Below are positions 26,830 through 62,331 of a DNA stretch of 64,000 bases, one piece after another; the stretch's first letter is position 1; each line of letters begins with the position of its first letter. The notes beneath the pieces were generated by a model, which saw only the letters and a list, made by a program, of their open reading frames with translations, searched no databases and was not told the origin of the DNA. The stretch comes from Marsupella aquatica (lineage: Eukaryota; Plantae; Marchantiophyta): the NCBI GenBank assembly GCA_973895155.1, contig OZ316898.1, forward strand, positions 13,295,659 through 13,359,658, read 5' to 3'. The translations under genes were made by a program, and so were the position numbers.

Positions 26830-27440
26830 TGGCAAAGCATCGTAAGAAATGCTATGATGAACCTAGTAATGAACCCAACAAGTATTGGGTATTTGTATTG
26901 ATGGTATAGATCAAAAGAAAACTGAAGTACCACATTATTTTTATTTGCTATCCAAAGAACATGTATGAGAAAAACTTCATCCTAGCCTATACATGTTGTG
27001 GGTTGTCTTATCTTAAATAGAAAGCTTGTGGCAAAAGTTTTTCTCACCTACCCCAACATCCACAATGATGCAAATCTCACCATTCATGTTATTCAAAAAA
27101 ATTTGAATACACAGGATGGGATGCTACCATGGTTATTATATCTTCAATTGGATAATACTATTAGGGAGAACAAGAATAAATTATTGATGACATATCTACA
27201 CTTGTTGGTAGATTTAAAGGTTTTTGACAAGATAAAAATTGGTTTTTTATTGGTTGGTCATACGCATGACCAAATAGATCACATATTTAGCAAGTTCTCA
27301 TCTAGGTTAAACAAGCATAGAGCATTTTGCTTAGATACTCTTGCTGATATCATACAACAGGTATATTCTCCTCAAACAAATGTAACTTTTGTGGCTGAAG
27401 TTGCTGACTTTCAAAATTTTGTGGATGAGACCAACAACAT
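26830..27440 (+). pseudogene. Degraded DUF7869/Sola-like DDE transposase (second lineage)
   Basis: IDGIDQKKTEVP upstream (frameshifted), then LYLQLDNTIRENKN and FLLVGHTHDQID motifs. Confidence 0.8.
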
Positions 27441-27688
27441 CTTTAGGGTTGGGAACCCCTCAAATGTAAGACAAACAATTTATTTTTCAACCCCTATGAA
27501 GTTGGAGTATTCCAAAAATTTGGTTAGAAAGACCCTCATCTTCAAATTATATGTCTCCAAAAATTGGATTCAGAAAAGACCCTATTATGCTTTTGATAAA
27601 ATTCTTAAGTCTTCCCTTCGAACCAAGAAAATGACCATATCCTTTGTCGCACGTGATGTACCATTTTTGTTCAAGTGAAACCCTCAAG
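27441..27688. mobile_element. Partial copy of hAT-like MITE family M2
   Basis: Aligns with 32785-33032 and ends AGTGAAACCCTCAAG; left TIR missing. Confidence 0.75.
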
Positions 27689-33439: not shown

Positions 33440-34295
33440 TACGGCCATTAGGACCATAGCCGTAGCGTCGAATAGCACGAATAGTCGTCTTTGCCATTAT
33501 GAATAGATTAGGAGTAGGTTAGTTGACCAAATGATTACGAATTAAGGAAGAGGATTATTACGCTCGACCGAGGTACGGTGGCGACGGCAGAATAAAAATC
33601 TATTAGGAGAATCATGCTTGGACCAAGACGCCGACTTCAGCTCATTATCAACGACCAAAACGGCCTTGCCCTCTCACGCTCGAGCTCACCCTAGCACCCC
33701 TATAAGAGCGGAGTCGATGGCGCTGTGGGTCATTTGCTCATTTCTACCTTTCGGGATTCGCGGATGCTGCCATTCACTCTCGCCTCTGGCTCAAATCAAG
33801 CTGACCTTTATGAGGAAGTTATCAAGGAATAAGAGCGGATTGTGGCAAGATTTAGTCAGGGCGAGTAAGGCCTCCACCAGCAAGCGGACTGACCGGGCGG
33901 GAACACGGACTCAACGAACCAGACTACAAAGGTTAGTATGACCCTTATAGCCTTGGGATTTTGGGCCTTGTTTGGCGAGGTTGGTGCTAAACTCTCTGAG
34001 ACTTACTGGTACTCTTGCCCCGAGAAAGCCGCTTATGAACGAAGATACGCGAAGCTGGTGGCCAAAGTAGCACAGGTTAACTGTGAGAAGACGGCCACCA
34101 ACAGGGATTCCAGTTACAACGAGCTGTGGGATTACATCACCGAGCTATATATCAGCGAGGAAGGGTTCAGATTGGTGGCAGAGGCAATTCTTGAAATCCT
34201 CGCAAAGTTCTTTAGGCTGAGGGGCAGCCAGAGACTGACTCCAGTGGAGTTCGACAAGATTCCGGGATACATCGACCAGCAGACCCTTGGTTTAG
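33440..34295 (+). mobile_element. Fragment of a G-like coding LTR (promoter plus first ORF, 33938-34295)
   Basis: TATAAGAG at about 33700 upstream of an ORF weakly similar to 60179-60700 (P..YE.ER.Y.....A). No termini or TSD recovered. Confidence 0.35.
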
Positions 34296-34664
34296 GAGGT
34301 GTTTGCCAAGATGGAATTAGACGGCTATTCTAAGGTTAGTGAAGTTACTATGTACAACATCTGGAATAATTCTTTGATAACTTTGACTTTCACAAGGATC
34401 AGTCTATTCATTAAAACTGGAAAATTCTTTGATCTTTGGACATTTAGGCACCAAAAAATATATATTTGGGCACAAGAATTGTACATTTGGGCAGTGGGAG
34501 TTGTACATTTGGGCACCAGATGTTGTACATTTGGAGGATCAAGATTGTACATAGGAGAAAATGAAATATTAATTTGGATTCTAAAGAAAAACATTTGGGT
34601 GATAATAATGTAAAATATATTGGATAAGAAGTAGAACTTACTTACATTGATTCAATCTGACTAA

Positions 34665-34785
34665 TAGAATATAACTGTCTAGTAAAGCTTCAATATGATC
34701 GCTACCCATATAACTAGTAAAGCTTCAATAATTATGATCTCTACCCATATAACTAGTAAAGCTTCAATATGATCTCTACCCTTAG
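34665..34785. repeat. About 35-40 bp tandem repeat (CTAGTAAAGCTTCAATATGATCTCTACCC), 3 copies, downstream of the transposase
   Basis: Direct repeats visible in the sequence. Confidence 0.8.
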
Positions 34786-35207
34786 CTAGCTAAATTAACC
34801 TTCTACTTAGTTACTAATTGAGAGCATTTAATATATTAAATTTGAATGATACCTGGCTTACTATCCATTCAGACATTCAAGTAATTTGTTACATTCTAAG
34901 CAACTCGAGTTGAAACTAAGGTTTACTAGTAAGAGGCAGTCACATCCTATCATGGATATTAAGACTTCATGTAATATATAGTCTGTATTGATATAATAAT
35001 TAATTAAAGCAATTATAAAGGTATCCAAGTCCAATTACCTCCACCTATTCAAACTAGTATCCCAAAATATTATAATAATTAGTTACTTTAAAAATAGATA
35101 TACTACTTAGTACTAACCAACAGTAAGTACTAAAGACATCTCTAATTCCAAACTAATTGACATAGACTCCCTCACTCTGACAGAGTGACTACTAAAAAAC
35201 ATTTGAC

Positions 35208-38200
35208 TTACTCAACAATCCCTTCCATGTAGGTTTTGAGTGTTTTCAAAACATTCTTGGGAATGGTCAAACCTCTATCAATTATATTTTCTTCTCTAGA
35301 GCGTGACTTGAATCCATACATAGCAGAATTAGCAAATTGCCAACGTTCAGTGGCACTGTCAAACCCAGGATCCACCTCCCAAGTCTTAGTGGTCTGAAAG
35401 CAACGTGAATATCGCACATGATCCGGTGCATCATGCTTACCATGTTTAGGCCTCCACCATTGCACTTGGAACATAGGAGCATACCGTATACTAGTAGGAG
35501 AATTCTCATTGCATTACAATTCTCCTGAAGGAACTTCATGGTTTGGGTCCACAACACCCAAAGCTCTCACCAACTAGAAACGTTCTTTCCCATTCTTCTT
35601 ATCCCATTCATCCTCTGGATGGAGAAATACAAAGTGACCCTCTTGAATGTCCTGCAGAGGAATCCAACGTGCAAGTTCTTGCTCGTGTCGAGCGCCAACA
35701 AATGTTGCAGCTTGATCCTCCATCTCTTCCAGGTACTCATTTTGAAGCTCCACCATTTCTGGATTCTGTGTACTACTACTAGGCTCCCCCAATGGTTCAG
35801 AGGTTCCTGTACTATTAACCTTGTAACCAGTTCCGTGGTTGGTTTTTGGCCAGAACTCATATGTCAATGTTAACTGTATTTCTACCTCCCCTTCAATTGT
35901 AAGCTCCCCAGATAATACTTGCACCACCATCTCCCAATATTTCACCAAAGTAAACCGCTCACGATATGCTGTAGAGGTCTCATCCTTACAACTCTTCTTC
36001 AAAAACTCAATGTAATGATTAAGGAATGGGATGGTTTCTTCAACCTTGCCTCGTACATCCCCGGAGATGGGTTTTGCAAACGGTTGACCTTCTGGTAAAA
36101 TGAGAGCATTGGTGTTGGAATCAGTTCTCCAAATGGACCTTCCGGTTGGAGGGTACCAAGGTTGTTTCACATGTGCTTTGTATTGATAAATTGGAACATT
36201 ATCTCTCATAGAGAACAGAAATACCACTGGTTTTGAGTGACCCTCTATGTCTTTTACCTTGAAAGTTTTCAAAAACTCTTTGTAAGCTGCAACCTCTTGG
36301 ATCAATCGTGGGACAAGATGAATGCTTTCACACTCCCAAACCTCACCCATCAACCCCAAGAGGGTAGAAAACTCAGTGTACTTCACTTGGTTGGATACTT
36401 TCAAAAACAATGCATCGACATCCTCATGGGTGTGACCAACCATGAGAAACGACATCTGCACTGTTTCAAAAACCCCTCTACTAACAAGCTCATTGCAAAA
36501 TGCCATCATGTACTGGTTTTTGTTATCTTTCCCTGGATTATCTATTTGCAAGGTCAGGTGCCTTGGCAATGGTTTGAAAGAGGTAGACGTAGCCTTGGGA
36601 TCAACACCAAAGTCGTCATCCACCACATTTGATAACCCAAGATCTTGGTCATCTTCAGCTCCTTGAAATCTAGCAATTGAGACTTTTTTGGGTCCTAAGT
36701 AACCTGCGAGAAATGCTTCAAAGTCCAAAAGAGATTGAAAAATTGGCCTCGTTGCAGCCCAATATAATCCTTCAAGGAGGTCTCCAGATTTTTCCCCCTT
36801 GTAATCCTCCAGATCTCTAAGGCACTTGGCCAATGATGTCACTGTGAAGTTTGCATCTCCCGGCCAAAGCCCAGTGAAACTGAAGTGAGCATACACTCCG
36901 GGATCCCTTCCATGGGTCAACATCCCAGTGAGCGCAATGGGGAGCGGTTGACCACTACCAGACAATGATTTAGGAGTGGGGACCAACCTAGGGATCGAAG
37001 TCTTGGCTTGGTCCATCTTGTCATGTATAATGCAAAGATAGTTCTCAGGATCCTTCTTCGCAAGAACCCTATGAGCATAGTAAACATATCTCCTAGACAT
37101 TTGCTCACGAAGATGGCCAGCTCTTCTTTCCTCAATCTCTAAATGCTCTTTCTTTCTCTTCTCCCGCATCAACTGATCTTTGAACTTAGTGCAAAGTGTA
37201 CACTTTGCAAATGCACTTCCCTTGTGAAAGTCAAAATTCATGAAGGACTCACTCCAGAGTTTATACATAGTGTTTTCACTCACCTTCACGTAGCCATCTA
37301 ATTCCATTTTTGAGTATACCTCCTCAAAAATCTCTTTCTTTGTGAAACAAGATGGAAGTCTGTACTCAATTGTGTCAGTACCATGAGACCCTCCATAGGG
37401 AAGATGCGGCATGGGTTCTCCGTTTTGGGTTAGAATGGACTCCAACAAAGCACAAGCGTGCAAGGTGCTTCCCCGTGTCTTGTGTGAACCCTTGTTTCCG
37501 TGGAATCCAACCGTGCAACCTGCTTCATATTGATTTTTGTAATCATAATACTTGGCAATGCTGAATCCATGCATTTTAATAAATGCACCCTTGCAAACAA
37601 GTCTACTTACAACAAAATATCCTTTTGTCTCCACTTCCTTCTCCCTACAGCCAAAAAGAGTGAGAATGTGACTGGTTTTGTTGTCGCTTGACATCCCATG
37701 GTATTCCCTCCTTATCGCCTGTAGGTCTTCTCTCGGCATGTTGAGGCAACACTTCAACTTACAACAACCATCTCTTTGGATGGAGTCAATTTCCTCCTCT
37801 GTGATTTTCAGTATCGCCCGAGACTCCAAGTGCTTCTTCCTTTTTTCATCTGGGTTAACCTTTGTTCTCTTGATGAAATTATACGGGCGCTTTGAAAACT
37901 TAGTGTCACCTTTCATATCTACCTCTAGATGATCTCGACCATCAATAATTGGTTTCGGAGAAACCTCTTCAATGAGATCCAGAAGAAAAATACCCCTTGA
38001 TATCAGCAGAAGTGAACGGATGGCCCACCTAACAAGACCAGGCACTCTTGGGGAGATATTTGGGAAAAATAGAGGGTCAATCACGCGTGTGACCACAACC
38101 CCAACGTGATCTGGCCCAAGAACCTCATCATCAATTGCACCTGACTTGAAAGGAACTGGGATGATGCCAACCCCCACTTTGGTCCGATTATCCTCAACAT

Positions 38201-38921
38201 ACAATTCCACCTCCTCGGTCATCCAATTAGAACGCAAACTATAATCCTTGAAATTATAATTTCCAAAAACATCCCGTGTGGACAGGTCGTTTAGTATATC
38301 TTGGGAAGAACTCCTCCGAGTATCATCCTTTAAATTCCAGAATACAAAAGTGTCCAATGCTTCCTGAATGGTATCGGCTCCAGCGTGAGGAAAGGGTAAC
38401 CTCTCCCTTCCTTGAAAAACTTCACATATTTTCACACTAATCCTAGAAGTGCTAAGTCTTTCATTGTGACAGGTCTCATCGGGATTCGTCTTGAATACAA
38501 ATCCACGAGCCACAATCTGATTGCCGATACAGAGCTCGACTTCATCGCCAGATATAATCGAGTCTCCCAAAATTCCCACCAAAGATTTTTCTGGTACAAA
38601 ACCGGGAACCGTATCCTTTGTAGAACAAGAGTCATCCATTTGTGTTGTCGCTGGAGTTGACTGTGACTTCAAATATGCAAAAGAGGCATCCCAAATAATG
38701 CAGGAGTCGACAGCATCAAACAGGGTCCGGATCGGCGGCAAAGGGTAAGGAATTTCCCGTGATCCCTCATAGCACTTCTGAATGAGAACTCCAATACGAT
38801 TACTTCCCAAATCAACATTACGCACTGAGTCACCCGGGTCAACCTTGAGGATGGTCCCGCAAGCAACTTCCACTCCGTCGATTACGAGGAAAACCTCGTC
38901 CCCTCGAAAGAAAATCCCCAT
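35208..38921 (-). CDS. DUF7869/Sola-like DDE transposase with three N-terminal Tnp1/En-Spm-like repeats; two premature stops near the C-terminus
   Basis: ORF 35574-39107, likely ATG at 38921. Motifs IIHDKMDQAKT, LQIDNPGKDNKN, FLMVGHTHEDVD, plus CxxC and CCxxxC. In-frame tail 35208-35474 matches the outer copy's C-terminus. Confidence 0.85.
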
Positions 38922-41655
38922 TTTGAAAACGTGGTCCAAACCGTTGGATGTAGTTACCTCGAGATGATCTCGAGGTAAAGTGACTACAAAAACAAACCAA
39001 AAAACCCAAGTGTAGAAGTTTATCCCGCAAAACTGTGTGATAGAGAAAATAAGAAACTCTTCTACCTCGAGACAATCTCGAGGTAGAAGAGGGACCAAAA
39101 ACACCAATATGTAAAAATTCAGAAGTATTTAGCTCAAGACGATCTTGAGGTAGAATATGAAATCTCACTAAATAGCGAATTCAGATTCTATAACTCCGAC
39201 TATCTACAAACCCAATTAGAAGAAGGACAACCGAATGCACGATTAGATAGAAGGCAAAAGTTAATAATTTTGAGGATCAAACTTATGACTCGAGATGATC
39301 TTGAGCCAAAAAGGAAATTGTATTTGACAAAGATACTATTATGAATAATAAGCACCCCAAAATAAGAACATATAAATGGCTCTAGATGATCTAGAGGTAT
39401 GATTTGGTGCAATTAAGAAAGTAGGCTCTCAGTTTACTGAGAAATAGCTTCTAAAAGGCCATCAAATAGAGGGAAAAGGCTTCCAAATGGATTTTGACCG
39501 ACATTAGTATAAGCTAAAAAGGTTTGGGTTTCTAAAAGATAGGAGCTCAATTATTTTAGACCTCCTTCAGAGCTTAAAATGATAATGTCTTGACATATCC
39601 TAAACACAAATGCAGAGTCCACAACCCTTAAAAATAACGATAGAAAGAGATCAGAGCAGAAATCTAGAGCCAGAGAGAGGGAGAGGGAGAGGGAGAGAGA
39701 GCAGAGAGAGGCAAAGGGAGCAACGAGCGAGCAGTGAAACGAAATGAGAAGAATGACCCACGGGAGAGCAAAGAGAAGCAATATATAAAATCCTGACTAA
39801 CAAAAAGGCCAATCAGACGGCTTGGTTGAACTTGTGGCACGGCTAAACTCGCGATAGAGCTGAAGTACGGATAACAATAATGACAACACGTGTGACCATA
39901 ATAATGACTGTACACACCCAGCAAGTTGCATGGCAGCCTGCTTGAGCCTGCACGAGCCCGTGGCACGCTTGGCACGACCCTCAAGGCCGACCCCCGAGGG
40001 GCTTATAGTGGCTTCAGGGGGTTTGAACTCCCCATTTTCACATTCGCCTCCTCGCCTCCTCGCGTCCCTTGCCTCCTTGCCTCTAGATTTTTTTGCGCTC
40101 TTGCCTCGAGATCCTTGTATTAGCCTCAAGATATTAGAGGGCCAAGATTATTTTTTTTCCTCAAGATTTTATAGGGTCAAGATTTTGTGTCTAGGCTCGA
40201 GATTTGATAGGGTTGAGATTTTCTGTTTAGGCTCAAGATTTGTTTTTAAGTTCTCAGCCCGTAGTACATTCCTCTCTTCACCAGCCATGTCGACTGTTGT
40301 AGATTTCTCCAAGGAGGACTTCGCTGAGTACAACCTTGCAACCGTTGGGGATGAGCTTCAGACCCATCTAGACTCAGCGCATCAGATCCATCGCACCATT
40401 AAACGTAATTCATCATCTTTGTTGATTGTTCAGGTTTAACTCGAGATCGTCTCGAGCTTCAATTGGTCCAATTGTTTCTGGATTCCTTGGATGCAGTTGA
40501 GGCTCGAGATCATTTCGAGCCTATTGATGTTTTCTGCATTACTTTGCTTCAAAATTTTGTGATATCAATTGATTTTGCATTTGATGTAAGTGGCATGAGG
40601 CTCGAGATAGCCTCGAGCCAATATGCATTTCCTGCATGTTACCTAGTCAGATTTCTTCAAGCTCTTATAATTCAAAAGTGAACATCATATCCAAAATATC
40701 TAAAATTTCCTTCCTCCAGGGACTTCTCTACCCTCCAACTCGTTCTGATCATTGACATCCGAACGGGTTTGTGGGTATGAGAAGTCAATGGAGAAAGTGG
40801 ATTTTAATCATTGATTGAATATGATGTTCATTGTTGAATATGATATTAGGATCACTCGTTTGAGATGTTAGGCTCGAGATCGTCTCGAGCCAAATATATT
40901 CATCACCAACTTCCATTATGTTCATTCGTATCCCTTGATCGATTTCTTCCAGTTGGAAGGACTCCATGTCGTCTACTTCAATTACTAATATCCTATCCAA
41001 TATGATCCAACATTGCCTTTTGGACCACTTTCTTAGTCCTCCAACTCGTTTGTGAAGATGACAAACCACTGAGTTAGAGGGTTTTGAATGTGGTCAAATA
41101 AGTGACATTGGATCATTTTTGAATGATTTATGATATGCAATGGAATAAAACCTCAACTGATATATCTGAGGATCAAGATCATCTCGAGCCCTTGTATTTT
41201 TCTTTTAAACAGATGGTGGCTCGAGATCATCTCGAGCCTCTTGTAGTTCTTGGCTATTGTGTTCTCTTTTTAGATTTCTGTGATGCCTAGCCAGGAATCA
41301 CTCGGCCAGTTAAGTGGGTAAAGCAGGAATGCACCCTAGAAACACCTTAGTATAAGGACAAAACAAGGAAAATATAAACAATTAGGGGTGACTATGGAAC
41401 CCGGACCGAGGCCGGAGGTAAGGACGCTGGGGGTGAAAACTTGATTAGGGTTAGGGCGCGCTAAGCGTCGGCGGCTAGGAAGGATCAACGGAAGGAAGGA
41501 CCGGAAGAGGAGAGGGGTAAGGACCTCTCGCGAGGAATAGTGGCTCATTTGCAAGAACGAACTGGGCAGACGACTACGGGAGGCCAAATGTTGTCAGCTG
41601 CTTAGACAAGCACTCGGGGTGGGAACAGATACCAACGATCGACTCAAGGAGGGTA

Positions 41656-44600
41656 TGAGCAACGTCAATCAAGCGACACATTTCTGGGGATGCCTGTTCG
41701 AACGGGCAACCGAGTACATCAAGACTTACGAGGACGAAGAATCAGAAAAGGCAGCTCGAGAATGACAGGAGCTCGCTCGATTGTGGGAGCTGCAGAAGAC
41801 GGCTTTCTTAGGAGGCGAACTCATCAAGGCCGAGTTCTTGTGGACTCCTACTTCCAATCAGCTTGACGATCTTCTGTTTTGCGAAGACAAAATCATCGGC
41901 ATTCGAGAGGCCATCAAGAACTGCAATGACATACACTGGGAATTGAAGGGTAGCACGGAGGGGTGGACAAAGGCAACTGTGCTAGGAGAAACCTCCACGG
42001 CAGCCGAAATGAAGAGGAAGGGAGCCGTCAACGATGAAGCCACCCCGGCAAAAAGAACGAGGTCGGCGGCACCAAAGAGGCCAGCCGAGCAGCAGAGCAG
42101 GAGGCAGGGAGAAGCCGAAGAGGAGGAGGTCGATCCCATCAATGCCATTCCAACCAGGGATGACACCTGGAAAGGCTGGGCGGCAACCCTACCAGTGGAG
42201 GTGCAACTACATTTTGCACGGGAGGAGGATGCATGCTTTACGGCCATGCAGACCAAGAAGTACCAAGGCTTCATGGCCGGATCCGGCTTAGAGGCCTTTG
42301 TAAGATTACCATGGCTGAAGCCGGAGGTGCCGGATTCAGACCTATTAGAATTCGTGGGGTCATGGGAACCCGAGACCAATTGCACGAGGATATATGGGAA
42401 GGATTTATATCTTACTCCCAAGGTGATTGCCGAAGTGTTTGGCTTGCCGATAGGCAATAAGACCAAGGTTGATACCAGGAAGACCTTGCCTGACAAAGAG
42501 TTCCGGTCGTTCCCCGGGCCATCAACGAAGAATGGCTTCTTCCGGAACACCTGCACCAACCCGCACATAGGAGAGATGATAGACTTCTTGCGGGTAACCA
42601 TGCATTGTAACTTGCCAAGGGCAGAGATCGGCAAGGCACAGGTCTATCTGGCAGAGAGGCTAGACCCAAGCCGGGACTACAACGGGTACCTCCTCAACCA
42701 ATTGAAGAAAATCTTAAAGGAGGAGCAGCAAGTAATTGGCATGGGGAGCGTGTCGCGGCTTGGCTATCACATATCGCTGTTGTGCCGGTATGCCAGAGGT
42801 CAGACGTTTGCCCCAGTACTTCCCCTACAGGTAAGGGCACCCGAGGAAGCTCCAGCACCGAGGCCGGTAGCAGAGAAGCCTCAACCACCTGTTAACCCTA
42901 CGATTGAGCAGGTGTTTAGGCCAAGGAAGGAAGACTTGCCAATGCAGCAACCAAGCATGCAGAATCTGCTGAAAATGCTGGAGAAGGAAAAGACGGCACC
43001 AGCACCGGCTTTGGCAGCGGCACCAATACAGGACACTGCCCCAAAGGTCAACTTAAGCAGACTTAGAAGGGAAAACTCCTTTACCGAAAACAAGGAGAGA
43101 ATCAAGCCAGAATCCAAGCCGGGTGTTCGAATGTACGTGGGAGTCTCAAGCTCTGAATCTGAGGCAGAATTGCCTGAAGCTCCTACCGACGAGGAGGAGA
43201 GGGAGAAGCCAGAAGTCCAAGAAGTAGAGGAGGCAGTGGAGGACTGCAGCCATGATAACTCCGACTATGGGTCGGACCATCACGTTCCAGGAGTAAGGAC
43301 CTGTGGCCGGTTTATCCCCACACTTCCAAGGGTAGTACGAGGGGACCCCAACCAGCAGAGTAGCCCTGAGTCTCCCCCACCAGATGTTGCTCCCCCGAGC
43401 TTTGACGGCATAAAATAGACGGCGCAAGAATTTCAGGAGTGAATCAGGCAGGAGGAGGAGGCAGCCCTGGCTAGGGAAAAGGATTTGCCAGGAGGAGATT
43501 GGCCGGAGGACATCAGGTGGCTAGCCGAAAAAGGAACCAAACCTCTAGCCACGATTGAAGAGATCCGCAAGACGGCTTGGGAACAGAGGCCGCGATGGAC
43601 GATGCCGATCACTTCTACTTACTCCACCTACGCTAAGAATAGAGCCATGGAGTATGGTGAGATATGTGGGGAACTTGCGCTCGGCATCTTTGGGGAGGAG
43701 TTGGAGGTAGGACCCTTTTTCCATAGGGAGCAGTTGGAGAAGCACCAATTAGAAGAAGCGGTGGCTTTAGAGAGAAGCAAGAAGGACGAGGTCATCCAGC
43801 GGCTTAGGAGGATGGAAGCCGAGATTGAAGATCTAAGGGCGGCCAAGAAAGCCCAAGATGAACTGCGGATTGAGCGGCATGAGCTGAACATCATGCAGGG
43901 GCAGTTGGACACCGCGCAGGCTGATAATCAGATTATCAAGGATAAACTGACTCAGACCCAGGGAGAATTGGCCGACGCAATCAAGGACAGGGAGAAATGG
44001 AAGAAGGAGCTGAGAGACGTAGAGGAGGCCCATATAGCAGTCAACAACCGGGTCACGGTGGAGACTTAGAGAAGGGAGAGGGCGCTGAAGGGAGAGCTTG
44101 AGGTCATCCGCAGAGCCCTTGAGCAGAAGGAGGCCGAGTTAGGGAAATCCTATCAAGGGATTATTGCGCTACAGCAGGAGCTTGCGTCCTTGACGGCCAG
44201 CTTCAGGGCCGACCTGCGGGAGAAGGACGCCCAGCTCGACCAGACTTATGCCAAGATGAATAACATGGAGTCTGAGGTCGTAGCGGAGCTCGACAAGGAG
44301 CTAAGAGCAACCCAGGAGGAGAGGGCTACCACCAAGAAGGAATTGGAGGAAGCCAAAAACGAGCTGGAGGAGGCACGTAAGGACCTGGATGAGACCCAGG
44401 AGGAGTTGGAGGAAATCACGAGGAAGATGGAGAACCTACAGCGGCGGGCCGACAACCAAACAGAGCGGCTGAAGAAACAAGCCACAGTATTTAAATGCTT
44501 AGCTGGATCAGGTCCATCTCCCATTGGGACAAACCAGTTAGTTACCCGGGGTGGTAATTGCCGAAGGACCAGCCGTGACACACGGCCTGGTGCCGGACAT

Positions 44601-45024
44601 TGGCGGCAAGGGGAAGGAACCGACTATGGAGATAGTGAAGAAGAAGAAGCGGAAACCTTCGGGGTCCGGAGGTTATTCGACCCCTCAAGCCGTACTCAAA
44701 CCGGTACCAACCTCCGGCATGAACATGGCAATAGATCCCGCTATCACCAAAGGTGGGGATGGCGCGGCCCAAGCCGAACTACTCAGTAATGAGGCCGGTA
44801 TCCCAGATCTGCCTCTTGAGCAGGCCGGGGAGGCCGTAGCCGAGGCTGAGGCCGTAGCCGTGAATGATTTCCGAGCCGAGGCCGAACCCGAGGGTGGGCC
44901 CAGTCAGGCCGATGGAGAGTTGACTCAGTCAAGGACAGGTAATCTGTCAGGGAACGAACCAACGGCAGTGGCTGAGGAGGAAGCGTTGGGGGCATCCATT
45001 GAGGATCCACCACCGGTGTCGTGA
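41656..45024 (+). pseudogene. Family A protein of roughly 1,100 aa: Transposase_32-like domain, Pro/acidic linker, coiled coil
   Basis: ORFs 41781-43418, 43485-44069, 44190-44789 and 44551-45024 separated by a few stops and one frameshift. LLEFVGSW..TRIYGKDLYLTPKVIAEVFGLP resembles PF20167. Confidence 0.8.
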
Positions 45025-45510
45025 CGGTGCAAGGGCGCCGTTCCTTTTAGGAAGGGCGGACGTGGAGGTAGGAGGCGTGAGTGGGCAGGGCGGGCGCTGA
45101 TCTCTAAGTTTAGGATTAGGATCAGGACCAGGAGGCGGCCCTGACACTTAGCTTAGTGGGATTGCGGTTCCACTGGTAGGAGCAACACTTGTGCTCCTGC
45201 CTTGCTGTACATAGGTAGATCCGGGCAGATAGATTACTGTTAGGTAGATTAGGCTTACGCTGCAAAGAATTAGGCGGATCCACTACCAGGATAAATACCT
45301 GGGCAGCGGGGAGCTCAGGGCCTCTTCTTTAGTAAGTTTTTAGTTTGCACCAGCCGGGCTGGGATCAAGTAGTAAGAGAAGCTCTTGGTTAGTCATACCG
45401 TGACCTTGTGTATATTCATGTTTCCTCATGCCTAAGAGCTGAATAGAGTTGGCCTCACGGCTTAGTTCGCAGAGCTTGTGTATGAGATATACTATTTGTA
45501 TGGCAAGTGC

Positions 45511-45986
45511 CCCGGGTACGCAACTCTTATATAATAGACAGGGGTCTACATTTTTATATGGACTAAAAAGTTGGCTATACAAAATAATTAAAATTTGAAA
45601 AAACCTGGGTTTCCCACTTTTAAAAATTTTCAAGTCATATAAAAGGTTTGGTTTCCTTCATTTTCCATATGAAATTAAAAAATATTCCTACACATGTTGT
45701 AATTTTTATTAAAAGATTTTTAAAATTTTAATAAAAATCCTAAAAAGCTGGCTAGTTTGGTTGTAGACCCCTGTATTAAAAAAAACCCATATAATTTGGT
45801 TTTGATCAACTTTTTGTACATCAAAACATGCTTGGTTTTTTTTTTAAGTTACATTTTTGGATTCCTTGAGTTCAGAGGTACAAGACTTTAGTAGACTAAA
45901 ATGAAATCTAAGATGGTCAATTGGATATAAGGCCATTATAAGGAATTAAAAACTTGCCTTATAAAAAGGGGAGTTGCATACCCGGG
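45511..45986. mobile_element. hAT-like MITE family M3, copy 2
   Basis: TIR CCCGGGTA(C/T)GCAACTC with 8-bp TSD GCAAGTGC. The empty site is present in A2 at about 9015-9030. Confidence 0.93.
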
Positions 45987-47544
45987 GCAAGTGCATGGTA
46001 TGACTCAGTCAGAAGGAGTCATTTTGCTATTTGTGTGTCGCATTAACTTGTGTGAAGAGTGCCCAGATCAACCAACAGAGGAAGGAAAGTAAGCAGGGGA
46101 GTGAGAGTTGGATGTGTCGAGTTGAGAGAGGTCTTAGCGGCTTAACCAAGCCTATTGGGGATCATTCTGGCGGCGGAATCCAAACATACCTAACCAGAAG
46201 GAGAGGAAGACAAGGGAAGGCCTAGATTAGGCCGACTACGTATCTCATGACCCGATGAAGGATCTGTCCAGTATATGTGTGTAAAAGGCTAATAGTAATA
46301 GTAGAAGGAGGTTAGCAGCGTCCCATGCCACTAAGCCGCGGAAACGGCCTCGCCAAGCGCGAAACCTGCGGGAATCGGCTTGCGCGGGGGGGTTTCTTGG
46401 GTTTAGGGAGCCATGGGACGCACCACAATTTCTTGGGGTTGAAATCTCTTTTTAAATTCCCCGAATGAGATGTGGCATTGGAACGTGTCAAACTACAGTG
46501 CATAAAACCGTCGACTCAGCTGTCCTAATAATGAAGGAAGATAGAGATCATCTCGAGCCTCCTATTTGTTTCTTGGTTTTGTGGTACATGTTTCTGACAA
46601 TTGCACCATTTTGGCTGTACCAGGTGCGAAATTGGGATCGCCTAATTTGGTAGTCGAAGATGAACATGCAATTGAGGTTTCCTGCCCTGGACAAGGTCAA
46701 TTTGGATTCTGTTGGGCCATTGAGCTTGCTGAAACTGAAGACATGGAAGGAACTATTATTTGTGTGAAGATGAGGTCTCCATCAGTCGATCCTCTAGTGT
46801 GCAGCCTACTAGGGCCTGTTTTTTCTATTGTGACAAGTAACAGTAAGGACATGGTTTTGACGGTGGAGAACCACGAGACAAGGAAGTGGGCTTTAATTAG
46901 ACTTCATGCCAAAAACTACTCTTGCGATCTTAACATTGAACGTGCAGCCAGGAAACAACTGAGCATGATATCAATGGGGTTCTTCCCCGAGGGTTTTACT
47001 GCAAGTAATTTGCTTGAAGATAGTCCTATATTTGGAGCCGACATAATTTTTGGATTCCTTTATTGTTGAAAGTATGGGTTTGATCGTGATGATGCATTCA
47101 CGACTCCTTTCATGTGGAAGGTTTTGAGACTAATGTCGGAATCAAAATTGGGGGAGTTTGAATCCATATCCCCTGATTTTGTGTTTGGAGCCGGAGAATT
47201 TGACGAGGATGCTTGTAAAAAGTGGGTGTTGTCTCATCGGAGACAAACAGGTAAAGTGAAATCCGTAGCTGCAGGAGACAAGACCTCCGGTTTGGACAAA
47301 AAGGAAGCAAAGGCGTCTCAAAAGAGGAAGAGGGTTGACAAACCCGAAAGCAAAGCGAAGAAGGCTCATCCGCCAAAAAAGTCTGCACCGCCCAAGGTAG
47401 ATCTCATTCCGGCATCTTCCTCGGGTGTGATTGCACATACCGATGATGACGGCACTCCAAGAGATGCTCCGGGAGAAAAGAGCATTAAAGAAGGAGCTGA
47501 AGTTCTTAAGGAGATTGAGGAGTATTACACATTTGGCATGAATG

Positions 47545-47830
47545 AAACTTTTGACATTCCTGTCACTAGTATAGATTCGCCTTCTGCAGTATTGGTATAT
47601 AGGATGTTCAATAAAGACCATGCCATGGAGGTCACGAAATCCATGGTTAGAAACCCTGGAATGGTACCAGCTATGGCGGATATAATTCTGTATTCAAGAG
47701 AGAGTTCACAGTTGCTCCATTATGAGAATACTCCTAAGGATCGAAAGGAGTTTGAGTGGGGTGTTAAGAATAAAAAGGTGCAGTTCCTTGCAATTAGTGG
47801 ACAATACTCGGCAAAGGCAGCTGTTTGGAT
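47545..47830 (+). CDS. ParB/Srx-like domain (within cargo gene)
   Basis: FDIPVTSIDSP...YRMFNKDHAMEVTKSMVRNPG...ADIILY...QFLAISGQYSAKAA follows the ParB N-domain pattern. The GxxR box is divergent (GQYS). Confidence 0.55.
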
Positions 47831-48969
47831 CATAGGTTGGGCTAAGAGCGATGCAAAGTTGAAGGAGGTCGCAAAGAGTCTGCAATATCGAAAGTCACAA
47901 ATTCTTTTGGACAAAACTCCAAGAACAATACTTGCTCAACACTCACAAAGGGCAAATGCTGTTAATAAGACCATGGAGTATGAGTCTTGTTTTCTTGATA
48001 CTATGGTCCATGCCCGTCGACAGTTTGACGAGTGTGGCCGTCCGGAGAGACCCGTGATTGGGTCCAATAGACTAACGGATCATCAAAAGTTCTAGGTATA
48101 TTCGAACTCAAATCCACTTCTAGCTCAAGATTGTCTCAAGCCTCGAGGTCAAGTTTATGTATTTGATTTATCTTCATGTATTCTCTGATAAATTTCAACA
48201 TAGTTCCTTAATTCTACCTCAAGATCATCTTGAGCCTCAGATTTTCTTTGTACTGTTTGGATCAGGATTTTATGGCCTTGGCCAAAATAATGACTGGAAA
48301 ATCCAATCTGAGGAATATTTTTTGGTTGCTTTTTTCGGAAGAGAACCTCTTCCAGTCTTGGAGACAAATGTGCATCGATTAGGTCAAGGGACTTCTTCCG
48401 GATGGTCTAGGGGAGTTAGGTTCAAAAATAAACGGGAAATCCCAGACAACAAAAATGATTACGCCGGCATTGTTTAGATGCTTTGAAGGAGACCTGAGTA
48501 GTGACGACATTCTGAAAGTTTTTACTGCCGTTCAACATCAGAAGGTTTTATTGAAGAAAGACCCAGCCAACAAATCTGATGTTCAATCAATGAGTGATAT
48601 GGCTCATACTTTCAAAGTCATGACCAAGCTGAGGGCAAAAATTGTGGAGTACTTCGTCTTGAAGTATCCGGATCGATTTGCCAATTCACTCACTTGGTTT
48701 GAGCTAACTCAATATTTGTCTGCATTTATGGATCGTGGTGAGTTGCCCAAACTTAGACAACTTGCTAGAGAGGTTTGGATTTCCAACCTCCTAAAAAGAA
48801 ATAGGCCAAAAGACCCATTTCCGCAAAGTCTTATTGTTAGGCTTGAGCAGATATATTGCAAGGTATTTGGCGGGATGCCTTCAATGGAGGATACTCCTTA
48901 TCGCACATTTTTTAGCAATAATTTGATGAGGATAATGAAGCCTGAGATTGTTGACTCGGTGCAAAGGAC

Positions 48970-49680
48970 GTGCCCACTTTTCATTGTCGATTTTGGTCGT
49001 CTTTCACAACGGCAATGGACAGATGCCAAAATTTTTGTCTTGCTGGAGTATTGTTTGTAGATGGCGAACTCGACGGAGCTCTTGGTAATCTTTTTTGTCC
49101 GTCAAGGCCCATTGATAGGCCAGATTCAGAGTGCCTTTGAAAAAATTCATCGTGAGAAGAAAGTCCACACAAAGCTGGAGTATGGGAGCTACTACCGTGA
49201 TCAGCTGCCCAAGGAGGAGGGAGATTTTCTCATTGGAGCCCGAGACTCAATCATCTTTGGGGGAATTTGTTGTGAAGAGGAACCAGACTGGTCCCAAATT
49301 TTCTTTGATGACTTTTATGTGTTTTGGAACTACAGTGAGAAGTGGGACAAAGACTTCACAATCTTGCCTTTGAAGACCCCTACTGGGAACAACAAAGACC
49401 AATCAAAGGGGAAAGATAAGCTCGATGAATCTACTGTTGATGTCAAAGTTTTGGAGAAGATGGCCCCATCTTATGAGATGGTCGGTTGGCGGGGTGGCTT
49501 TGTAAATCTGAGAGCAAAGCCTTTGCGAATGACAAAGCATCTTGTTGATTATTTCTCCTGCCCAGGTCACACAGTGTTGGATTTCTTCTCTGGAGGATAG
49601 ACATTGAAAGCTTGTATCATTCTTGGTCGGGATTGTTTTGTGTATTCGGACACAGCTCAAGAGATGGAATTCACAGAAGC
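48970..49680 (+). CDS. Beta-class N4C/N6A DNA methyltransferase-like domain (within cargo gene)
   Basis: KPLRMTKHLVDYFSCPGHTVLDFFSGG*TLKACIILGRDC matches the PF01555 C-terminal KP..L...LI..fS.pGd.VLDPFxGsGTT..Aa..lGR pattern. Candidate motif IV (PLFIVDFGR) is non-canonical. Confidence 0.65.
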
Positions 49681-50138
49681 CTTTTGCTCAGCTCCTCCAT
49701 GACAACAAGCAGGTTTTATATGTGCCACCCAAAGCGTCGTTAGCATCTCAGGAAATTACTGCCGGTCCCCTCGTTCTTATAGAAGAGGTGGCCTTAGACA
49801 TAGCTCCGGTGGAAGCCAGTGTTTTTGAGGAAGTATTTGCGGAGAATTTAGAGCATCGCAAAACGGAGGGCCCAAAAATCCCAAGCTACATGGAAGAGGA
49901 GGGTGAAATACTGCCTGAATTTGGAAATGATGCTCGAGATGATCTCGACCTTCCAGGTGTTCCTTCATCGGGTGGCCTTGGGGACGCACAACGTGAACAA
50001 CAATCTTCAACCTTGGATGTTGGCTGGGAATCCACCTTGCCGGACGCAGTTAGCCAACCAATTCCAAGCCCTCCTCAACTGGATGAGATTCTCTCTACTA
50101 AGAGAGCTAGTCGCTGCCATACTCCCCCTGAGGGTTTT

Positions 50139-50500
50139 CACCTTGACAGCAAATAGCAAACAGATTTACTATTACAAGCAAAAATTTTCCTGTTACGAGC
50201 AAAAATTTACTGTTACGAGCAAACTAGACAATCTAAAAATGTGTCATTAAAAGTCACAATTTTCAAAGTAGTTTAAAACATGACAATTTTTTGCTAGTGT
50301 AAGGCAATACTATTACTAGCTCCGGGCGCTAGCCAAAAAATATCGACTCACAATTTTTTTTAAATATTTTTTCCCCAAAAAAATTCCAAAAACAAAATTC
50401 CCAAAAACAATTCTAACAAAAAATTCCAAAATTTTTACCACCCATTTGCTGTTACGAGTAACTATTTGTTGTTTGTTGTTTGCTGTTTGCTGTCACGGTG
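50139..50500. mobile_element. MITE with CACC(T/G)TG termini and 5-bp TSD
   Basis: About 24-bp TIR CACC(T/G)TGACAGCAAA(T/C)AGCAAACA. TSD GTTTT/GTTAT. Excision gives in-frame PPEG-YTPPP. Confidence 0.82.
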
Positions 50501-51189
50501 GTTATACCCCTCCCCCTCAGGACGAGGCAGGTGCATCGTCCTCTCCCTTGGACCAAATGTTTTGCGCTTCAGAGAATAAGCTTGTTTTCACAGATTCTTC
50601 TACTGGAAGCCCCGTAATTCTCCCTTTTGTTGGGAAACCGGGGACTGAAATCGGTAGAACTGGTTACAAATCACTCAAAGCAAGTGCTACTCATTATGTC
50701 TGGATTGATGGACTGTCAAAAGGTCAACAAGTCAATATAGAGCAGTCTGAGAAGATTATTTGATCTAGAAAGTATAGGAAGGATAAGTTCAAATTAGTGC
50801 CAGTTTGGTCTGAGCCAGCTCTTGTTGAGACCCTTCCCGGAGGGATAAATTTGGACATCCAAAACCAACTAGGAGATAACCTTCTAGATGAATTTGGGTC
50901 TTTCAGCACGTGAGGTTGAAACCCAAGTTAGTTTGAACAGTCCTGAAATTCAACCGTCTAAATTATTATGTCTACCTTCACAGAAATAGGCGGGCCCTTA
51001 CCAGTTCTGGAGTACGTCGACAATAATCTCCGAAGATGTCCTGAGATTTCTTCAACTACTGACCTTCAACCAACAATAGGTATGATGTTGACTGTTGTTC
51101 ATTCACTTGTGATGCTCGAGATCGTCTCGAGCATTCCTCTGTTTTATCTCCCACAATTCTAACATTGGTGTTCCTTCTTTGCAAGACCC

Positions 51190-52243
51190 TTGCCTCCACT
51201 TCATGGTCCGATCAGACCAAAGCTATTGATTCTTGACCTCAACAAAATGTGTTGGGATTCTGTCAAAACGCCAAGTTCCAGACCGCGTCGTAGTGCGACA
51301 AGTGTCAAGGGTGTCCACTGGGGGAGACGTGGAGGGTTTAACTTTATGTATGTTGAGCGACCCCATCTTCACGAGTTCTTAATCGCAACTTTTTTGTTAT
51401 TTTGATGTTGCCATTTGGACTTGTGCAAGGAAACCCAGGACGGATGAAATGATTCATTTGATCTTTAGTCAAGAAGAGCGAGAGCAATTCAAGTTTATTC
51501 TCACACAAGAAGATACATTTGCTACTGGAATCCAGAGGCCTGACATTACCAATGGGAAGGCAAATATTCATTTGAAGGATTTGAGGGTTGTTTGGAAACG
51601 TTATGGTGGATTATACGACAAAACTAATACACTCCTTCTTGATGACACTCCAATGAAGGCATTTGCAAATCTAGAGAATTGTGGGTTGTTTTCTTCCTCA
51701 TTTTCGCATCACTCCACGGATGATACATTCTTTCCAGAAATACTGTGGCCTCTGCTCAGGAAATTGTATCATGCCTTCAATCTTCAGCACTACCTTTTTA
51801 TCAATCATCCAAAGTGGTCTATGATAAATGTTTTAGCGGACAGGGATCAACAGGCTGCCATTTATGCGTTGTTGACAGAGCGGTGGGGTAGTATGGTATG
51901 GGTTCATTCGGTTATCCATACAGTCTTGGATGTCACAGCGGACAAAATTCCTTGGGATGTCAAGAATGAAGTGCAACAATTATCACCAATGGAGGAATTG
52001 ACGGAGGAGGCGATCAATGACCTTGCAAAGACATTAATTGGATATCAGTACACAGGACCCTACAGAGACAATCATCGGGGATTTGTTTCGGAAGTCCTGT
52101 GGTGTAGGGACCTCACCACAAAGTTCTGGAATAGAAAGCCTCTCGATTTCTGCAATCGCGATATGAAATATGACCCGTCAGGGTCTAGATTTACTTGCTC
52201 AAATGAATTCTGCGGGGTGGAGGAGCATGAGATTTGGGTCTAG
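51190..52243 (+). CDS. FCP1/NIF-family HAD phosphatase-like domain (frameshifted)
   Basis: KLLILDLNK, RPHLHEFL, FDVAIWTCA, KDLRVVW and TNTLLLDDTPMKAFAN are PF03031-type motifs. Confidence 0.8.
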
Positions 52244-52949
52244 ATTATCTTGACCCTACACTGAACAGTTACGATGTGAGTTGTAGATATACATATTCTT
52301 ACTCGAAAAAAGAGTGAAGCTATGCGTACTATCCATTTGAGTCTAGATGCTGTTGATCCTCTTTTACTTGTAGATATGTTCTCAGAAAAAGGTTATTTGG
52401 GTCTCGACCCTATACAAAGGGAATAGCTAGAGATATAGATTCAACAACAGGTCAAAATTATGTGGACCCTATATTTGGGTCGAGATCATCTCGACATAGA
52501 TTTTTACATAGTAATTGATATACATTCAACAACCGGTCAAAACCATCTAGAGCCTGCATTGGGGCAGATGTGGTCTCGACCCTATAAAAATAGGTTTTTT
52601 ACTTTTATAATACATCACCGGTTTACCTTCCGTGTTTGTGTAACTTGGTTATCACGGGTCATTTGAATTTATTATATTGTCTTATTCTATGTTTCATTGT
52701 TTATATTGTATATAATAAGAATAATTTATTGTCTTTTAATTAATAAGTATTAATAATTGATAACTGAATTATTTAATTAATAATTTGGGCATTAGAATTG
52801 TAATTTTAGACCTCAAAAAGTGTATATTTGGCCACTAAAATGTATGCTTTTGGGGAACAAGTTATAGAACTTTTGGGTGTAAAATAAGAAATTTGAAGGT
52901 CAACTTCTGGACTAGAGAAATTCCAGTTTTAATGAATAGGGTGATAAGG

Positions 52950-54786
52950 GAAGTGCATTTGCCAAATGCACATTTTGCACTGAGTTCAAAGATCAATTGA
53001 TGCGAGAGAAGAGAAAAAAAAAGCGTGCAGAGATTGAAGAGACGAGAGCGCGACATCTTCGTGAACAAATGTCAAGAAAATATGTTTACTATGCTCATAG
53101 GGTTCTTGCAAAGAAGGATCCTCAAAACTATCTTTGCATTATTCACGATAAGATGGATCAAGCAAAGACTTGGATCCCCAGGTTGGTCCCCACTCCAAAA
53201 TCCCTCTCCAGTAGTGGTCAGCCTCTGGCTATTGCTCTTATTGGGATGTTAACCCATGGAAGAGATCCCGGAGTGTATGCATATTTCAATTTGACTGGAC
53301 TTTGGCCTGGAGATGCAGACTTTACTGTGACATCTTTGGCCAAATGCCTTCGAGATTTGGAAGATTACACAGGAGACAAAATTGGAGACCTTCTTGAAGG
53401 ATTGAATTGGAATGCAACTAGGCGAGCAACTAGGCCAATATTTCAGTCCCTTCTAGACTTTGAAGCATTTTTGGTCGGTTACTTGGAACCCAAAAATGTT
53501 TCAATTGTTCGATTTCAAGGCATTGAAGATGGTCAGGAGACTCAAAAATCAAGCACAGTGGATGTTGGTTCTAGGGATGATCCTGAGACTACCAAGGGCT
53601 CTTTCAAGCCCTTACCAAGGCACCTAACATTGTAGATGGACAATTCAGGGAAAGATAACAAAAATCAGTATGTGATGGCATTTTGTAGTGAGCTTGTTAG
53701 TAGGGGTGTTTGAAACTGTGCAAATGCCAGGTGAAAGAGATAGAAGGTCACTCAAAACCAGTGACATTTCTTTTCTCCATGAGGGATAATGTGCCAGTGT
53801 ATCAATATAAAGCACATGTCAAGCAACCTTGGCTTCCAACAATGGGGAGGCCCATTTGGAGAACTCATCCCATCACGAATGCACTCATTTTACCGGAAGG
53901 CCAACCATTTGCAAAACCTATATCTGGGGATGTACAAAAGAAAGCCGGAGAAATCATCCCATTCCTTAATTGCTATATTGATTTCTTGAAGAAAAGTTGT
54001 AAGGATGAGACCTCTGTAGCATATTGAGAGAGATTTCCTTTGGTCAAATATTGGGAGAATCTTGTGCAAGCACTGTCCGAGGAACTTACAATAGAAGGGG
54101 AGGGGGAAAGACAATTGTCATTGACAACTGATTTTTGGCCAAAGACTAACCATGGCACAGGTTACAAGATGATTTTGGGGACATCTCAACCGTCAAGTGA
54201 ACCCTCTCAAAATCCAGAGATGATGGACCTTCAAAATGAGTACATGGAAGAGATGGAAGATCGAGCTGCACCCTTTGTTGGTGCACGACAAGAGCGAGAA
54301 CTTGCACGTTGGATTCCCTTACAAGATATTCAAGAAGGTCACTTTGTATTTTTACGTCCAGAGGATGAATGGGAACAGGAAAATGGCAAAGGGCGTTTCT
54401 GGTTGGTTCGAGCTTTGGGTGGTGTGGATCCAAACCATGAGGTTCACTCAACAGATTTGAAATATATTGAAGGGTCTTCTTCAATGTCAGTTGAAAGCAT
54501 CCCTAAGAGGAATGCTCCTATGTTCCAAGTACAATGGTGGAGGCCTAAACATGGTAAGCATGATGCAAAAAATGATGTTCGATATGAACGTTGCTTTCAA
54601 ACCACTAAGATTTGGGAGCTGGATCCTGGGTTTGACAATGTTGCTCAAAGTTGGCAGTTTGCAAATTCTGCAATGTATGGGTTTAAGTCAGGTGCTAAAG
54701 AACATAATATTATGGATAGAGGTTTGACAATTCCCAAGAATGTTTTAAAAAGTCTCAAAATTTACATGGAAGGTATTGATGAGTAG
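52950..54786 (+). pseudogene. C-terminal half of the outer DUF7869 transposase, with stops and an internal deletion removing GHTHED
   Basis: ORFs 52997, 53710 and 54040 are closely similar to the inner transposase. VFETVQM is joined directly to QVKEIEGH. Confidence 0.9.
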
Positions 54787-55350
54787 ATTGATAGAGTAGG
54801 TCACAAGTCTCCACTCAATGTCTTGTGATTAAGAGGGTAAGTAGAGTTGATTCCCATGCATTTGTCTAAGGTGAGAGAACAAGACAATCAAATTAGTACT
54901 CTATGATCATTCTCTCAAAGTTATTGAATGGACTTTCTTATAATTATTATTTTATTTGTCTTAGTACATTTTAATTCTAGAAAATGATGCCATATATCAC
55001 TCCTTCTAGTAGGTTGGATATCATTCTAGTTAACTTTGTCTAGATAGTATAGTCATTCCATTGCATTGTTGTTTAGTTAGATATCTTACCCAAGCTAAAT
55101 GTTTTGAAGATAGATGATATCCAAGTTTATATGTTATTATTAGATTCTATCTATTTTCCAACCAAATGAACACTTTTATCACCCAAATGTTTTTAATATC
55201 ATCCAATTTAATATTTTATTTTCTCAAATTTTCAATTTTTGATACAAAAATTTACATTTAATGATGCTTGAATTTTCATTTTTCATTTTCCAAATTTACA
55301 ATTTTCATGCCTAAAAATATGTTTTTAAATCTTCAAATTTCCCTATATCC

Positions 55351-55785
55351 GGGGTAGCGAGGATCATCAGTTATCAGTTTTTCTGCTGAATTTTTTTTGA
55401 ATGTCAGCTGAGCAACTGAGATGACAACTTTGCACTTCCACGCATCTCAGCTAGGCGGCTGAGATTGACTCAATCTCAACTGACCTCGGCGAGATCAGCG
55501 TGCGGACAAAAAAATGGAAAAAAATAATTAAAAAAATAATTTCTTGAAAATTTCAAAACAAAAAAATAATTTGAAATTTTTTTTTGCCGAAATTTGGTAT
55601 CCGTATCATACGGACATCTGGTCATCTCGGCTGACCCCGCCGAGAGGTGATGTCCGTACGGTACGGACCCCATAGTGAAAAAAATTCCAAAAAAGAACGG
55701 TACGGACCCCATCTGAGATGATGTGGCGACTGATATTAGGTCAACTGATGGAAATGATTGATAACTGATGATGTAACTTTACTCC
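55351..55785. mobile_element. MITE family M1 in the outer transposon's subterminal region
   Basis: Perfect 14-bp IR ATCATCAGTTATCA (55363-55376, 55759-55772). TSD CTATATCC/TTATATCC. Absent from the equivalent region of the inner element. Confidence 0.8.
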
Positions 55786-62169: not shown

Positions 62170-62331
62170 TGTGGTGCGTCCCATGGCTTCCTAAACCCAA
62201 GAAACCCCCCAGCTCAAGCCGATTCCCGCAGGTTTCGTGCTTGGCGAGGCCGTTTCCGCAGCTTAGCGGCATGGGACGCTGCTAACCTTCTACTACTACT
62301 ATTAACATTTTACACACATATACTGGACAGA
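62170..62331 (-). mobile_element. Terminal about 160 bp of a family A LTR abutting Gypsy pol
   Basis: Reverse complement of 46265-46427. Confidence 0.9.

Follow-up and report, generated by a model that had tools for sequence, protein, structure and literature searches.

The 64,000-nucleotide stretch of the liverwort Marsupella aquatica (Eukaryota; Plantae; Marchantiophyta) analyzed here, referred to as the window (GenBank assembly GCA_973895155.1, contig OZ316898.1, positions 13,295,659 to 13,359,658 of the forward strand; all positions below are numbered within it), contains a large DNA transposon between positions 34398 and 52945. Between terminal inverted repeats (TIRs) and 4-bp target site duplications (TSDs), the element carries a minus-strand DUF7869 transposase gene and a divergent, plus-strand cargo (accessory) gene with ParB-like, amino-methyltransferase (MTase)-like, and NIF/FCP1-like HAD regions. 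Its total span is 18,548 bp, or 13,379 bp after subtraction of a nested insert of ~5,169 bp; an earlier note on this DNA had put the figure at about 13 kb, with nested inserts removed. The identity and architecture of the element as described here are held with high confidence. That the feature represents a nonfunctional copy of a two-gene, cut-and-paste transposon of the Sola1 superfamily in a liverwort-like genome, taken together with the recognition-module explanation proposed below, is considered probable. The features of the element and of the older copy that surrounds it were as follows.

34394 to 34397, no strand: left TSD, AAGG, read directly and present as a single AAGG in the paralogous empty site.
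34398 to 34422, plus strand: left TIR, ATCAGTCTATTCATTAAAACTGGAA, from TIR comparison, with the terminus kept in the Riccia L002 element and in the outer copy.
34436 to 34537, plus strand: subterminal array directly after the left TIR, five copies of TTGTACATTTGGGCA with a period of ~22 bp.
35211 to 38921, minus strand: transposase gene, with a DUF8039-like N-terminal region and a DUF7869 DDE core (Pfam DUF7869, 4e-40; homolog P0001 aligned over residues 1 to 1247).
36423 to 37022, minus strand: catalytic triad D634 (37020 to 37022), D794 (36540 to 36542), and E833 (36423 to 36425), in invariant columns of a 22-sequence alignment.
38958 to 41236, no strand: divergent intergenic region, with 11 of the 17 palindromes (GG)CTCGAGATSATCTCGAG(CC) located by palindrome search.
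46545 to 48092, plus strand: cargo exon with a conserved N-terminal region and a ParB/Srx-fold domain (47418 to 48092); homolog P0057 aligns across the whole exon at ~50% identity.
48093 to 48262, plus strand: cargo intron containing a palindrome at 48218, mapped as the gap between residues 1 to 152 and 153 to 307 of homolog P0066.
48263 to 49699, plus strand: cargo exon with a beta-class amino-MTase-like domain (family profile match to M.RsrI, 4.2e-6; fold from a Riccia homolog).
51163 to 52240, plus strand: NIF/FCP1-like HAD domain, split by a frameshift (Pfam NIF; motif I, LLILDLNKM).
52921 to 52945, minus strand: right TIR, from arm complementarity and an exact core match.
52946 to 52949, no strand: right TSD, AAGG, from direct reading and the empty site.
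52946 to 55825, plus strand: 3' part of the outer, older copy, with transposase residues ~636 to 1184 and a right TIR at 55801 to 55825; its 5' continuation lies at 34275 to 34397.

The boundaries of the element were well defined. The two 25-bp TIR arms were complementary at 23 of 25 positions (92%), and their 19-nt core, CTATTCATTAAAACTGGAA, was perfect at both element ends, with 0.06 matches expected by chance; the third match to this core in the window was the right TIR of the outer copy. The left flank (34280 to 34397) and the right flank (52946 to 53470) aligned contiguously, head to tail, to the reverse-complemented transposase gene of the element itself (36700 to 37340), with one AAGG at the junction. 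Because the flanks align contiguously to a transposase gene with a single AAGG, the element is concluded to have inserted into an older member of its family, within that member's transposase gene. This paralogous empty site is the strongest evidence obtained, and it proves the insertion event. The TIR pair and 4-bp TSD read by the earlier note were recovered, although the TIRs, which it had called intact, match at only 23 of 25 positions. The element is real and has the limits that the note gave it, and most of the note's structural account holds. The outer copy was ~80% identical to the studied element at the DNA level. Only its transposase residues from ~596 onward were detectable, split by the studied insertion, and its expected 5' half upstream of 34275 was missing or replaced. 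Matches to TTGTACATTTGGGCA numbered 7 in the window, compared with 2.7 expected, and five of these formed the array next to the left TIR. No inverted counterpart of this array was found at the right end of the element. The TTGTACATTTGGGCA repeats are candidate transposase-binding repeats.

The transposase coding sequence starts at 38921, which aligned to P0001 residue 1, and its open reading frame (ORF) remains open from 38921 to 35577. In-frame stops at 35574 to 35576 and 35514 to 35516 precede the conserved C-terminal region and fall on conserved positions (homologs have Trp at the first), and homology extends beyond both stops to 35211. Homologs were searched for with residues 480 to 1010 as the query. 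The Pfam match and the invariant D/D/E columns corroborate the DDE transposase proposed earlier. For comparison with the brown algal element Sola1-1_Ec32, the transposase sequence of the latter was taken from printed supplement 2 of PMC12477816 and compared by eye; in the stretch that begins at the second catalytic D and ends with the MVGHTH..D block, 23 of 54 ungapped positions were identical, and the first-D block was also similar. The core motif common to both proteins was QxDN..NKN.Y.M...RG..TV..F.MVGHTH..xD..F. Since the core-block residues match the Sola1-1_Ec32 transposase, DUF7869 was placed in Sola1. Sola elements make 4-bp TSDs (PMC10741241, PMC3627910, and the supplement of PMC12477816), and the element in the window has a 4-bp TSD, TIRs, and a catalytic core homologous to Sola1 transposases, in agreement with its earlier description as Sola-like. 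The name DUF7869 occurred in no paper turned up by a literature search. A third DUF7869 fragment was present at 26986 to 27675 on the plus strand (Pfam, 1.5e-42); because it is only ~34% identical to the studied transposase, it is assigned to another superfamily lineage that is present in this region as well.

The cargo gene occupies 46545 to 52240 on the plus strand, is 1,898 codons in genomic length, and has at least one intron. It was searched exon by exon or ORF by ORF. The alignment of P0057 across the first exon runs through an in-frame TGA at 47067, and the MTase-like exon contains in-frame stops at 48380, 49058, and 49598, the last of which interrupts MTase motif I (LDFFSGG*TLKACIILGRD). 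A frameshift at about 51390 (51385 to 51395) lies in the NIF domain, where the Pfam NIF match was 6.9e-8 for profile positions 51 to 155 and 0.01 for positions 1 to 48. Interrupted by four or more in-frame stops and by a frameshift, the cargo in this copy is a pseudogene. The strand, intron, and length of the divergent, intron-containing cargo of up to about 1,900 codons described by the earlier note were retained, but as those of a gene that no longer encodes an intact protein. The studied copy is dead, with a broken cargo gene and two stops in the transposase gene, and neither protein can be expressed intact.

The ParB-like region was identified from predicted structure. An AlphaFold2 model of 47418 to 48092, built with 36 homologs, had a predicted local distance difference test (pLDDT) score of 88.7, and in a Foldseek comparison with the PDB all of its ~29 top matches were ParB, Noc, PadC, Srx, SbnI, or KorB (best match, E = 2.5e-3; probability, 0.99; template modeling [TM] score, ~0.3). 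Against a viral library, the model matched ParB, Spo0J, DndB-like, and GmrSD-N proteins. The conserved box ISGQHS (family motif, FLAISGQHS; GQYS in the window) resembles DGQHR/GxxR, with Ser in place of Arg. By these model comparisons, a ParB/Srx fold for this domain is supported.

A beta-class amino-MTase fold for the second domain is likewise supported, in this case by the model of the Riccia homolog P0141, which matched beta-class N6-adenine and N4-cytosine MTases (M.RsrI, 5.6e-10; CcrM, 3.6e-9; 49 matches at ≤1e-3). A profile of the cargo-family MTase region matched M.RsrI at 4.2e-6 over HPxxK...LDFFSGG, the S-adenosylmethionine (AdoMet)-binding region, and this block was also present in the window at 49451 to 49699. 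At the fold level, the motif order was that of the beta class (IV...I). The third domain exceeded the Pfam cutoff for NIF (21.8 bits) in the window (32.8 bits), in L008 (39 bits), and in Riccia proteins (49 to 54 bits), where it was full length (profile positions 1 to 160 of 160).

Both of these domains departed from the expected catalytic signatures. At the predicted strand-loop position of MTase motif IV, Riccia proteins have LVFLD(V/L)THP and the window has LFIVDFGRL rather than (D/N/S)PP(Y/F/W). HAD motif I, expected as DxDx(T/V), is LLILDLNKM in the window and LLILD(V/I)EGLL in 18 of 21 Riccia proteins. The DPPY and DxDxT signatures are noncanonical across the cargo family. The ParB, amino-MTase, and C-terminal domain (CTD) phosphatase-like regions named in the earlier note consequently stand at the level of fold or family (Foldseek, the M.RsrI profile match, and Pfam NIF), whereas the enzymatic activities that it implied are not supported.

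The combination of transposase and cargo was not confined to the window. The closest protein relatives were found in the liverwort Riccia sorocarpa (35 to 50% identity) and on Logan and ENA contigs (up to 67% identity), and Riccia sorocarpa contained at least 53 cargo homologs. At two Riccia loci (L001 and L002), a DUF7869 transposase lay on one strand and the ParB-like, MTase-like, and NIF pieces, in unchanged order, on the other, and an ENA contig (L008) had the same divergent arrangement of transposase and cargo. The end of the Riccia L002 element, ATCAGAGTATTCATTAAAAGCGGAAAATCC, compared with ATCAGTCTATTCATTAAAACTGGAAAATTC in the window, shows that the TIR terminus is conserved across genera; no TIR was found in Riccia L001 when it was searched for. 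The family design consists of 25-bp TIRs, 4-bp duplications, a DDE transposase of ~1,250 aa, a divergent three-domain accessory protein, and a shared intergenic region.

This distribution bears on whether the studied copy captured its cargo once, from a host or prokaryotic gene in a Pack-type manner, an account to which a cargo without an adjacent transposase (L004) and one beside a mere remnant (L003) could be attributed but which is very improbable, as the same three-part gene lies divergent to transposases that are 35 to 57% identical among L001, L002, L008, and the window and as the TIR is conserved across species. The cargo is, as the earlier note had supposed, a passenger of the transposon family and not the product of one isolated capture. 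The closest homologs of both genes, P0001 (1,250 aa; Logan contigs of 3.9 to 4.5 kb) and P0057 (510 aa; contigs of ~2 kb), were uninterrupted ORFs. Their short contigs may be transcript assemblies, in which case they would indicate expression in a related species.

A 17-bp palindrome, CTCGAGATSATCTCGAG, often extended to 21 to 23 bp, was restricted to the element. Its 17 sites, compared with 0.05 expected, all lay between 37923 and 52495, and both the nested insert and the remaining 45 kb of the window were free of it; one of the 17 was in the mapped cargo intron (48218). Riccia elements contained 37 and 34 sites of a GCTTCGGGACGCGTCCCGAAGC-like palindrome, which were also confined to the elements and located in introns and intergenic DNA, and L003 carried the variant TGGGGACGCGTCCCCA. 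The half-sites (TCGAGAT, TCGGGAC, and TGGGGAC) differed by lineage with symmetry kept. In related elements, the introns and the divergent intergenic region were filled with short repeat arrays. These included five palindrome-bearing units of 39 bp in an intron of a Riccia transposase gene (L001, 11795 to 12078), a 79-bp tandem array directly upstream of the transposase in L008 (1627 to 2500), and a different repeated motif in L009 (1346 to 3708 and 7681 to 8308).

Known systems resemble the element in part. ParB-like domains fused to beta-class N6/N4 MTases (PF02195 plus PF01555) are carried by phages and plasmids, with M.RsrI and CcrM as structural relatives. The cargo shares with these fusions the domain order and both folds. 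It differs from them in being a eukaryotic gene with introns, in having lost DPPY and the arginine motif of ParB, in ending with an additional HAD domain, and in a sequence similarity that falls below Pfam thresholds. FCP1, SCP1, and TIM50, which contain NIF-type HAD domains (PF03031), are likened to the cargo by its above-threshold Pfam match, full length in Riccia; in the cargo, however, motif I is DxE or DxN instead of DxDx(T/V), and the domain forms part of a transposon-borne fusion with ParB-like and MTase-like domains.

Among transposons, the closest counterpart was Sola1-1_Ec32 of Ectocarpus, a 21.5-kb element with a 4-bp TSD that encodes a 1,104-aa protein with ParB-like and DNA-MTase regions opposite its transposase (PMC12477816). 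Both elements are longer than 13 kb and have a Sola1-type transposase core, a 4-bp TSD, and an opposite-strand accessory gene with a ParB-like domain followed by an N4/N6 DNA-MTase domain, the accessory proteins being likened by reported domain layout. The elements differ in their TIRs (282 bp with AACCG termini in Ectocarpus and 25 bp starting with ATCAG in the window), in the number of domains (two reported in the Ectocarpus protein, to which the window protein adds an NIF/FCP1-like domain), and in the host, which for the window is a land plant. Accessory genes as defined for the Ectocarpus element (PMC12477816), i.e., within the TIRs, on the opposite strand, and encoding a ParB-like and then an MTase domain, were found in the window, L001, L002, and L008. 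In the red alga Bostrychia, giant Plavaka (KDZ-type) transposons carry PAG2 (N6-MTase plus SET) and PAG3 (ParB plus 2-oxoglutarate [2OG] oxygenase), and the authors report ParB accessory genes beside inverted-repeat arrays and propose self-binding (bioRxiv 10.1101/2025.02.11.637652). Further related accessory genes are attributed in that preprint to Iyer et al. 2011. The Plavaka elements are similar to the element studied here in having a ParB-like domain by internal inverted-repeat arrays and, along with it, a domain that modifies DNA or chromatin; they differ in transposase superfamily, in the distribution of the domains over two proteins with SET and 2OG partners, and in that NIF is not reported.

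The architecture, of which the earlier note had known no description, is thus already known from brown and red algal transposons, including a giant Sola1 element with an opposite-strand ParB-plus-MTase gene. New here are the land-plant host, the fusion to NIF, the loss of canonical catalytic motifs throughout the family, the TIR shared across genera, and the lineage-specific palindromes. The liverwort family extends the ParB-methylase transposon design to land plants, with the gene pair and the TIR kept across genera.

In the explanation proposed for these features, the accessory protein would be a recognition module specific to its element. Binding of the ParB-like domain to its candidate sites, the element-only, lineage-differing palindromes in the intergenic region and introns, would place the methylase-like and phosphatase-like domains on the chromatin or transcription complexes of that element. 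Given the replacement of DPPY and DxDxT throughout the cargo family, the methylase-like and phosphatase-like domains may be binding modules, or enzymes of an atypical kind, instead of a standard methylase and CTD phosphatase. Binding of the palindromes by the ParB-like domain is a tentative prediction, regarded as possible. A broader conjecture, which is doubtful as a whole, is that the accessory protein and the palindromes form a coevolving self-recognition system, a counterpart of ParB-parS in eukaryotic transposons from brown algae to land plants, in which each lineage's domain would read its own palindrome and coat or bridge the element, and the catalytically altered domains would act on that element alone, tuning its RNA polymerase II (Pol II) transcription or allowing it to escape silencing.

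The strongest competing account is that the palindromes are unrelated to the ParB-like domain and are sites for the transposase or host factors, hairpin-forming sequences giving rise to small RNAs, or what remains of tiny palindromic insertions that seeded the introns. It is rather unlikely, although the sites lie in introns and the shared promoter region, several abut splice-site-like GT or polypyrimidine-AG contexts, and some family members carry nonpalindromic repeat arrays instead. Transposase binding is better accommodated by the separate subterminal array, and symmetry persists even as the sequence differs from lineage to lineage, a pattern expected of sites with a dimeric DNA-binding partner.

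An account with fewer chances of being correct, close to the marking or anti-silencing role suggested by the earlier note, takes the accessory protein as a working enzyme pair that methylates element DNA (N6-methyladenine or N4-methylcytosine) and dephosphorylates the Pol II CTD, thereby marking the element or shielding it from silencing. This is consistent with the strong Foldseek matches of the beta-class MTase fold, the retained AdoMet-binding region, and the above-threshold NIF match, and the same idea has been proposed for algal elements (PMC12477816; bioRxiv 10.1101/2025.02.11.637652). The replacements in MTase motif IV and HAD motif I, in Riccia as in the window, argue against it and make it unlikely; with both "enzyme" domains lacking canonical catalytic motifs, caution is warranted, as the system may act through binding and not catalysis.

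Several observations weigh against the recognition module itself or against a constant pairing of cargo and transposase. Profile and fold searches, which the earlier note had suggested as a check on the ParB and MTase domains, were divided: Foldseek favored both folds, a profile matched M.RsrI, and NIF was above threshold, but the ParB-like domain had no Pfam or PDB sequence-profile match, and the PF01555 scores of the window and nine Riccia proteins (14.6 to 21.7 bits) were below the gathering cutoff of 26.7. Searches of single cargo pieces against Pfam and the PDB gave no ParB match and a weak MTase hint only, and a profile of the ParB-like domain matched only low-complexity proteins in the PDB. 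The Foldseek E value and TM score of the ParB-like model are modest, the conserved arginine of GxxR is absent (GQHS), and the MTase fold was modeled on the intact Riccia homolog P0141, not on the stop-broken copy in the window. No recurrent perfect palindrome was found when L008 to L010 were searched, L008 and L009 carrying other short repeat arrays instead, and the subterminal repeats or palindromes could serve the transposase. L003 keeps only a transposase remnant beside its cargo, and L004 has a cargo without a transposase within 10 kb. The expectation that the same cargo would adjoin other DUF7869 transposases was borne out at Riccia L001 and L002 and in ENA L008 but not in amphioxus or on a JGI contig, where no cargo adjoined the transposases.

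Algal ParB-methylase accessory genes have only recently been proposed to bind or modify their own element, and the liverwort family makes this idea testable. Its third, CTD-phosphatase-like domain points to transcription, and its candidate sites, which vary in sequence between lineages with symmetry kept, turn a speculative idea into a question of binding specificity.

The nested insert holds a smaller insert of its own.

~41279 to 46447, plus strand: nested unrelated repeat, designated R, recognized from other copies in the window; boundaries approximate, flanked by an imperfect 16-bp direct repeat, TCTCTTTTTARATTYC.
45508 to 45986, minus strand: 479-bp insert within R, 98.96% identical to 21935 to 22412 in the opposite orientation.

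R consists of an ORF of ~1,000 aa (41766 to 44786) and a tail segment of ~1.5 kb. Other copies were located at 2881 to 6197 on the plus strand and 18252 to 9973 on the minus strand; across the three copies, the ~1,000-aa ORFs were 61% identical at the amino acid level and were followed by a tail of ~1.2 to 1.5 kb. The ORF at 41766 to 44786 had no Pfam or PDB match. It was considered as a part of the cargo and rejected, as it has separate copies elsewhere and no palindromes and as cargo homologs begin at ~46626. The R tail was also found inverted at 18366 to 19648 and in part at 62167 to 62332. The 479-bp segment looks like a recently mobile, small nonautonomous element.

Elsewhere in the window, a pair of 2.4-kb repeats (6273 to 8697 and 24196 to 26653) was 93% identical, with one copy interrupting an R tail segment. 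Self-comparison revealed short tandem-repeat arrays at 1034 to 1335 and 12234 to 12624. A minus-strand ORF at 62497 to 63999, which runs toward the end of the window, encodes the reverse transcriptase and RNase H of a long terminal repeat (LTR)-type retrotransposon.

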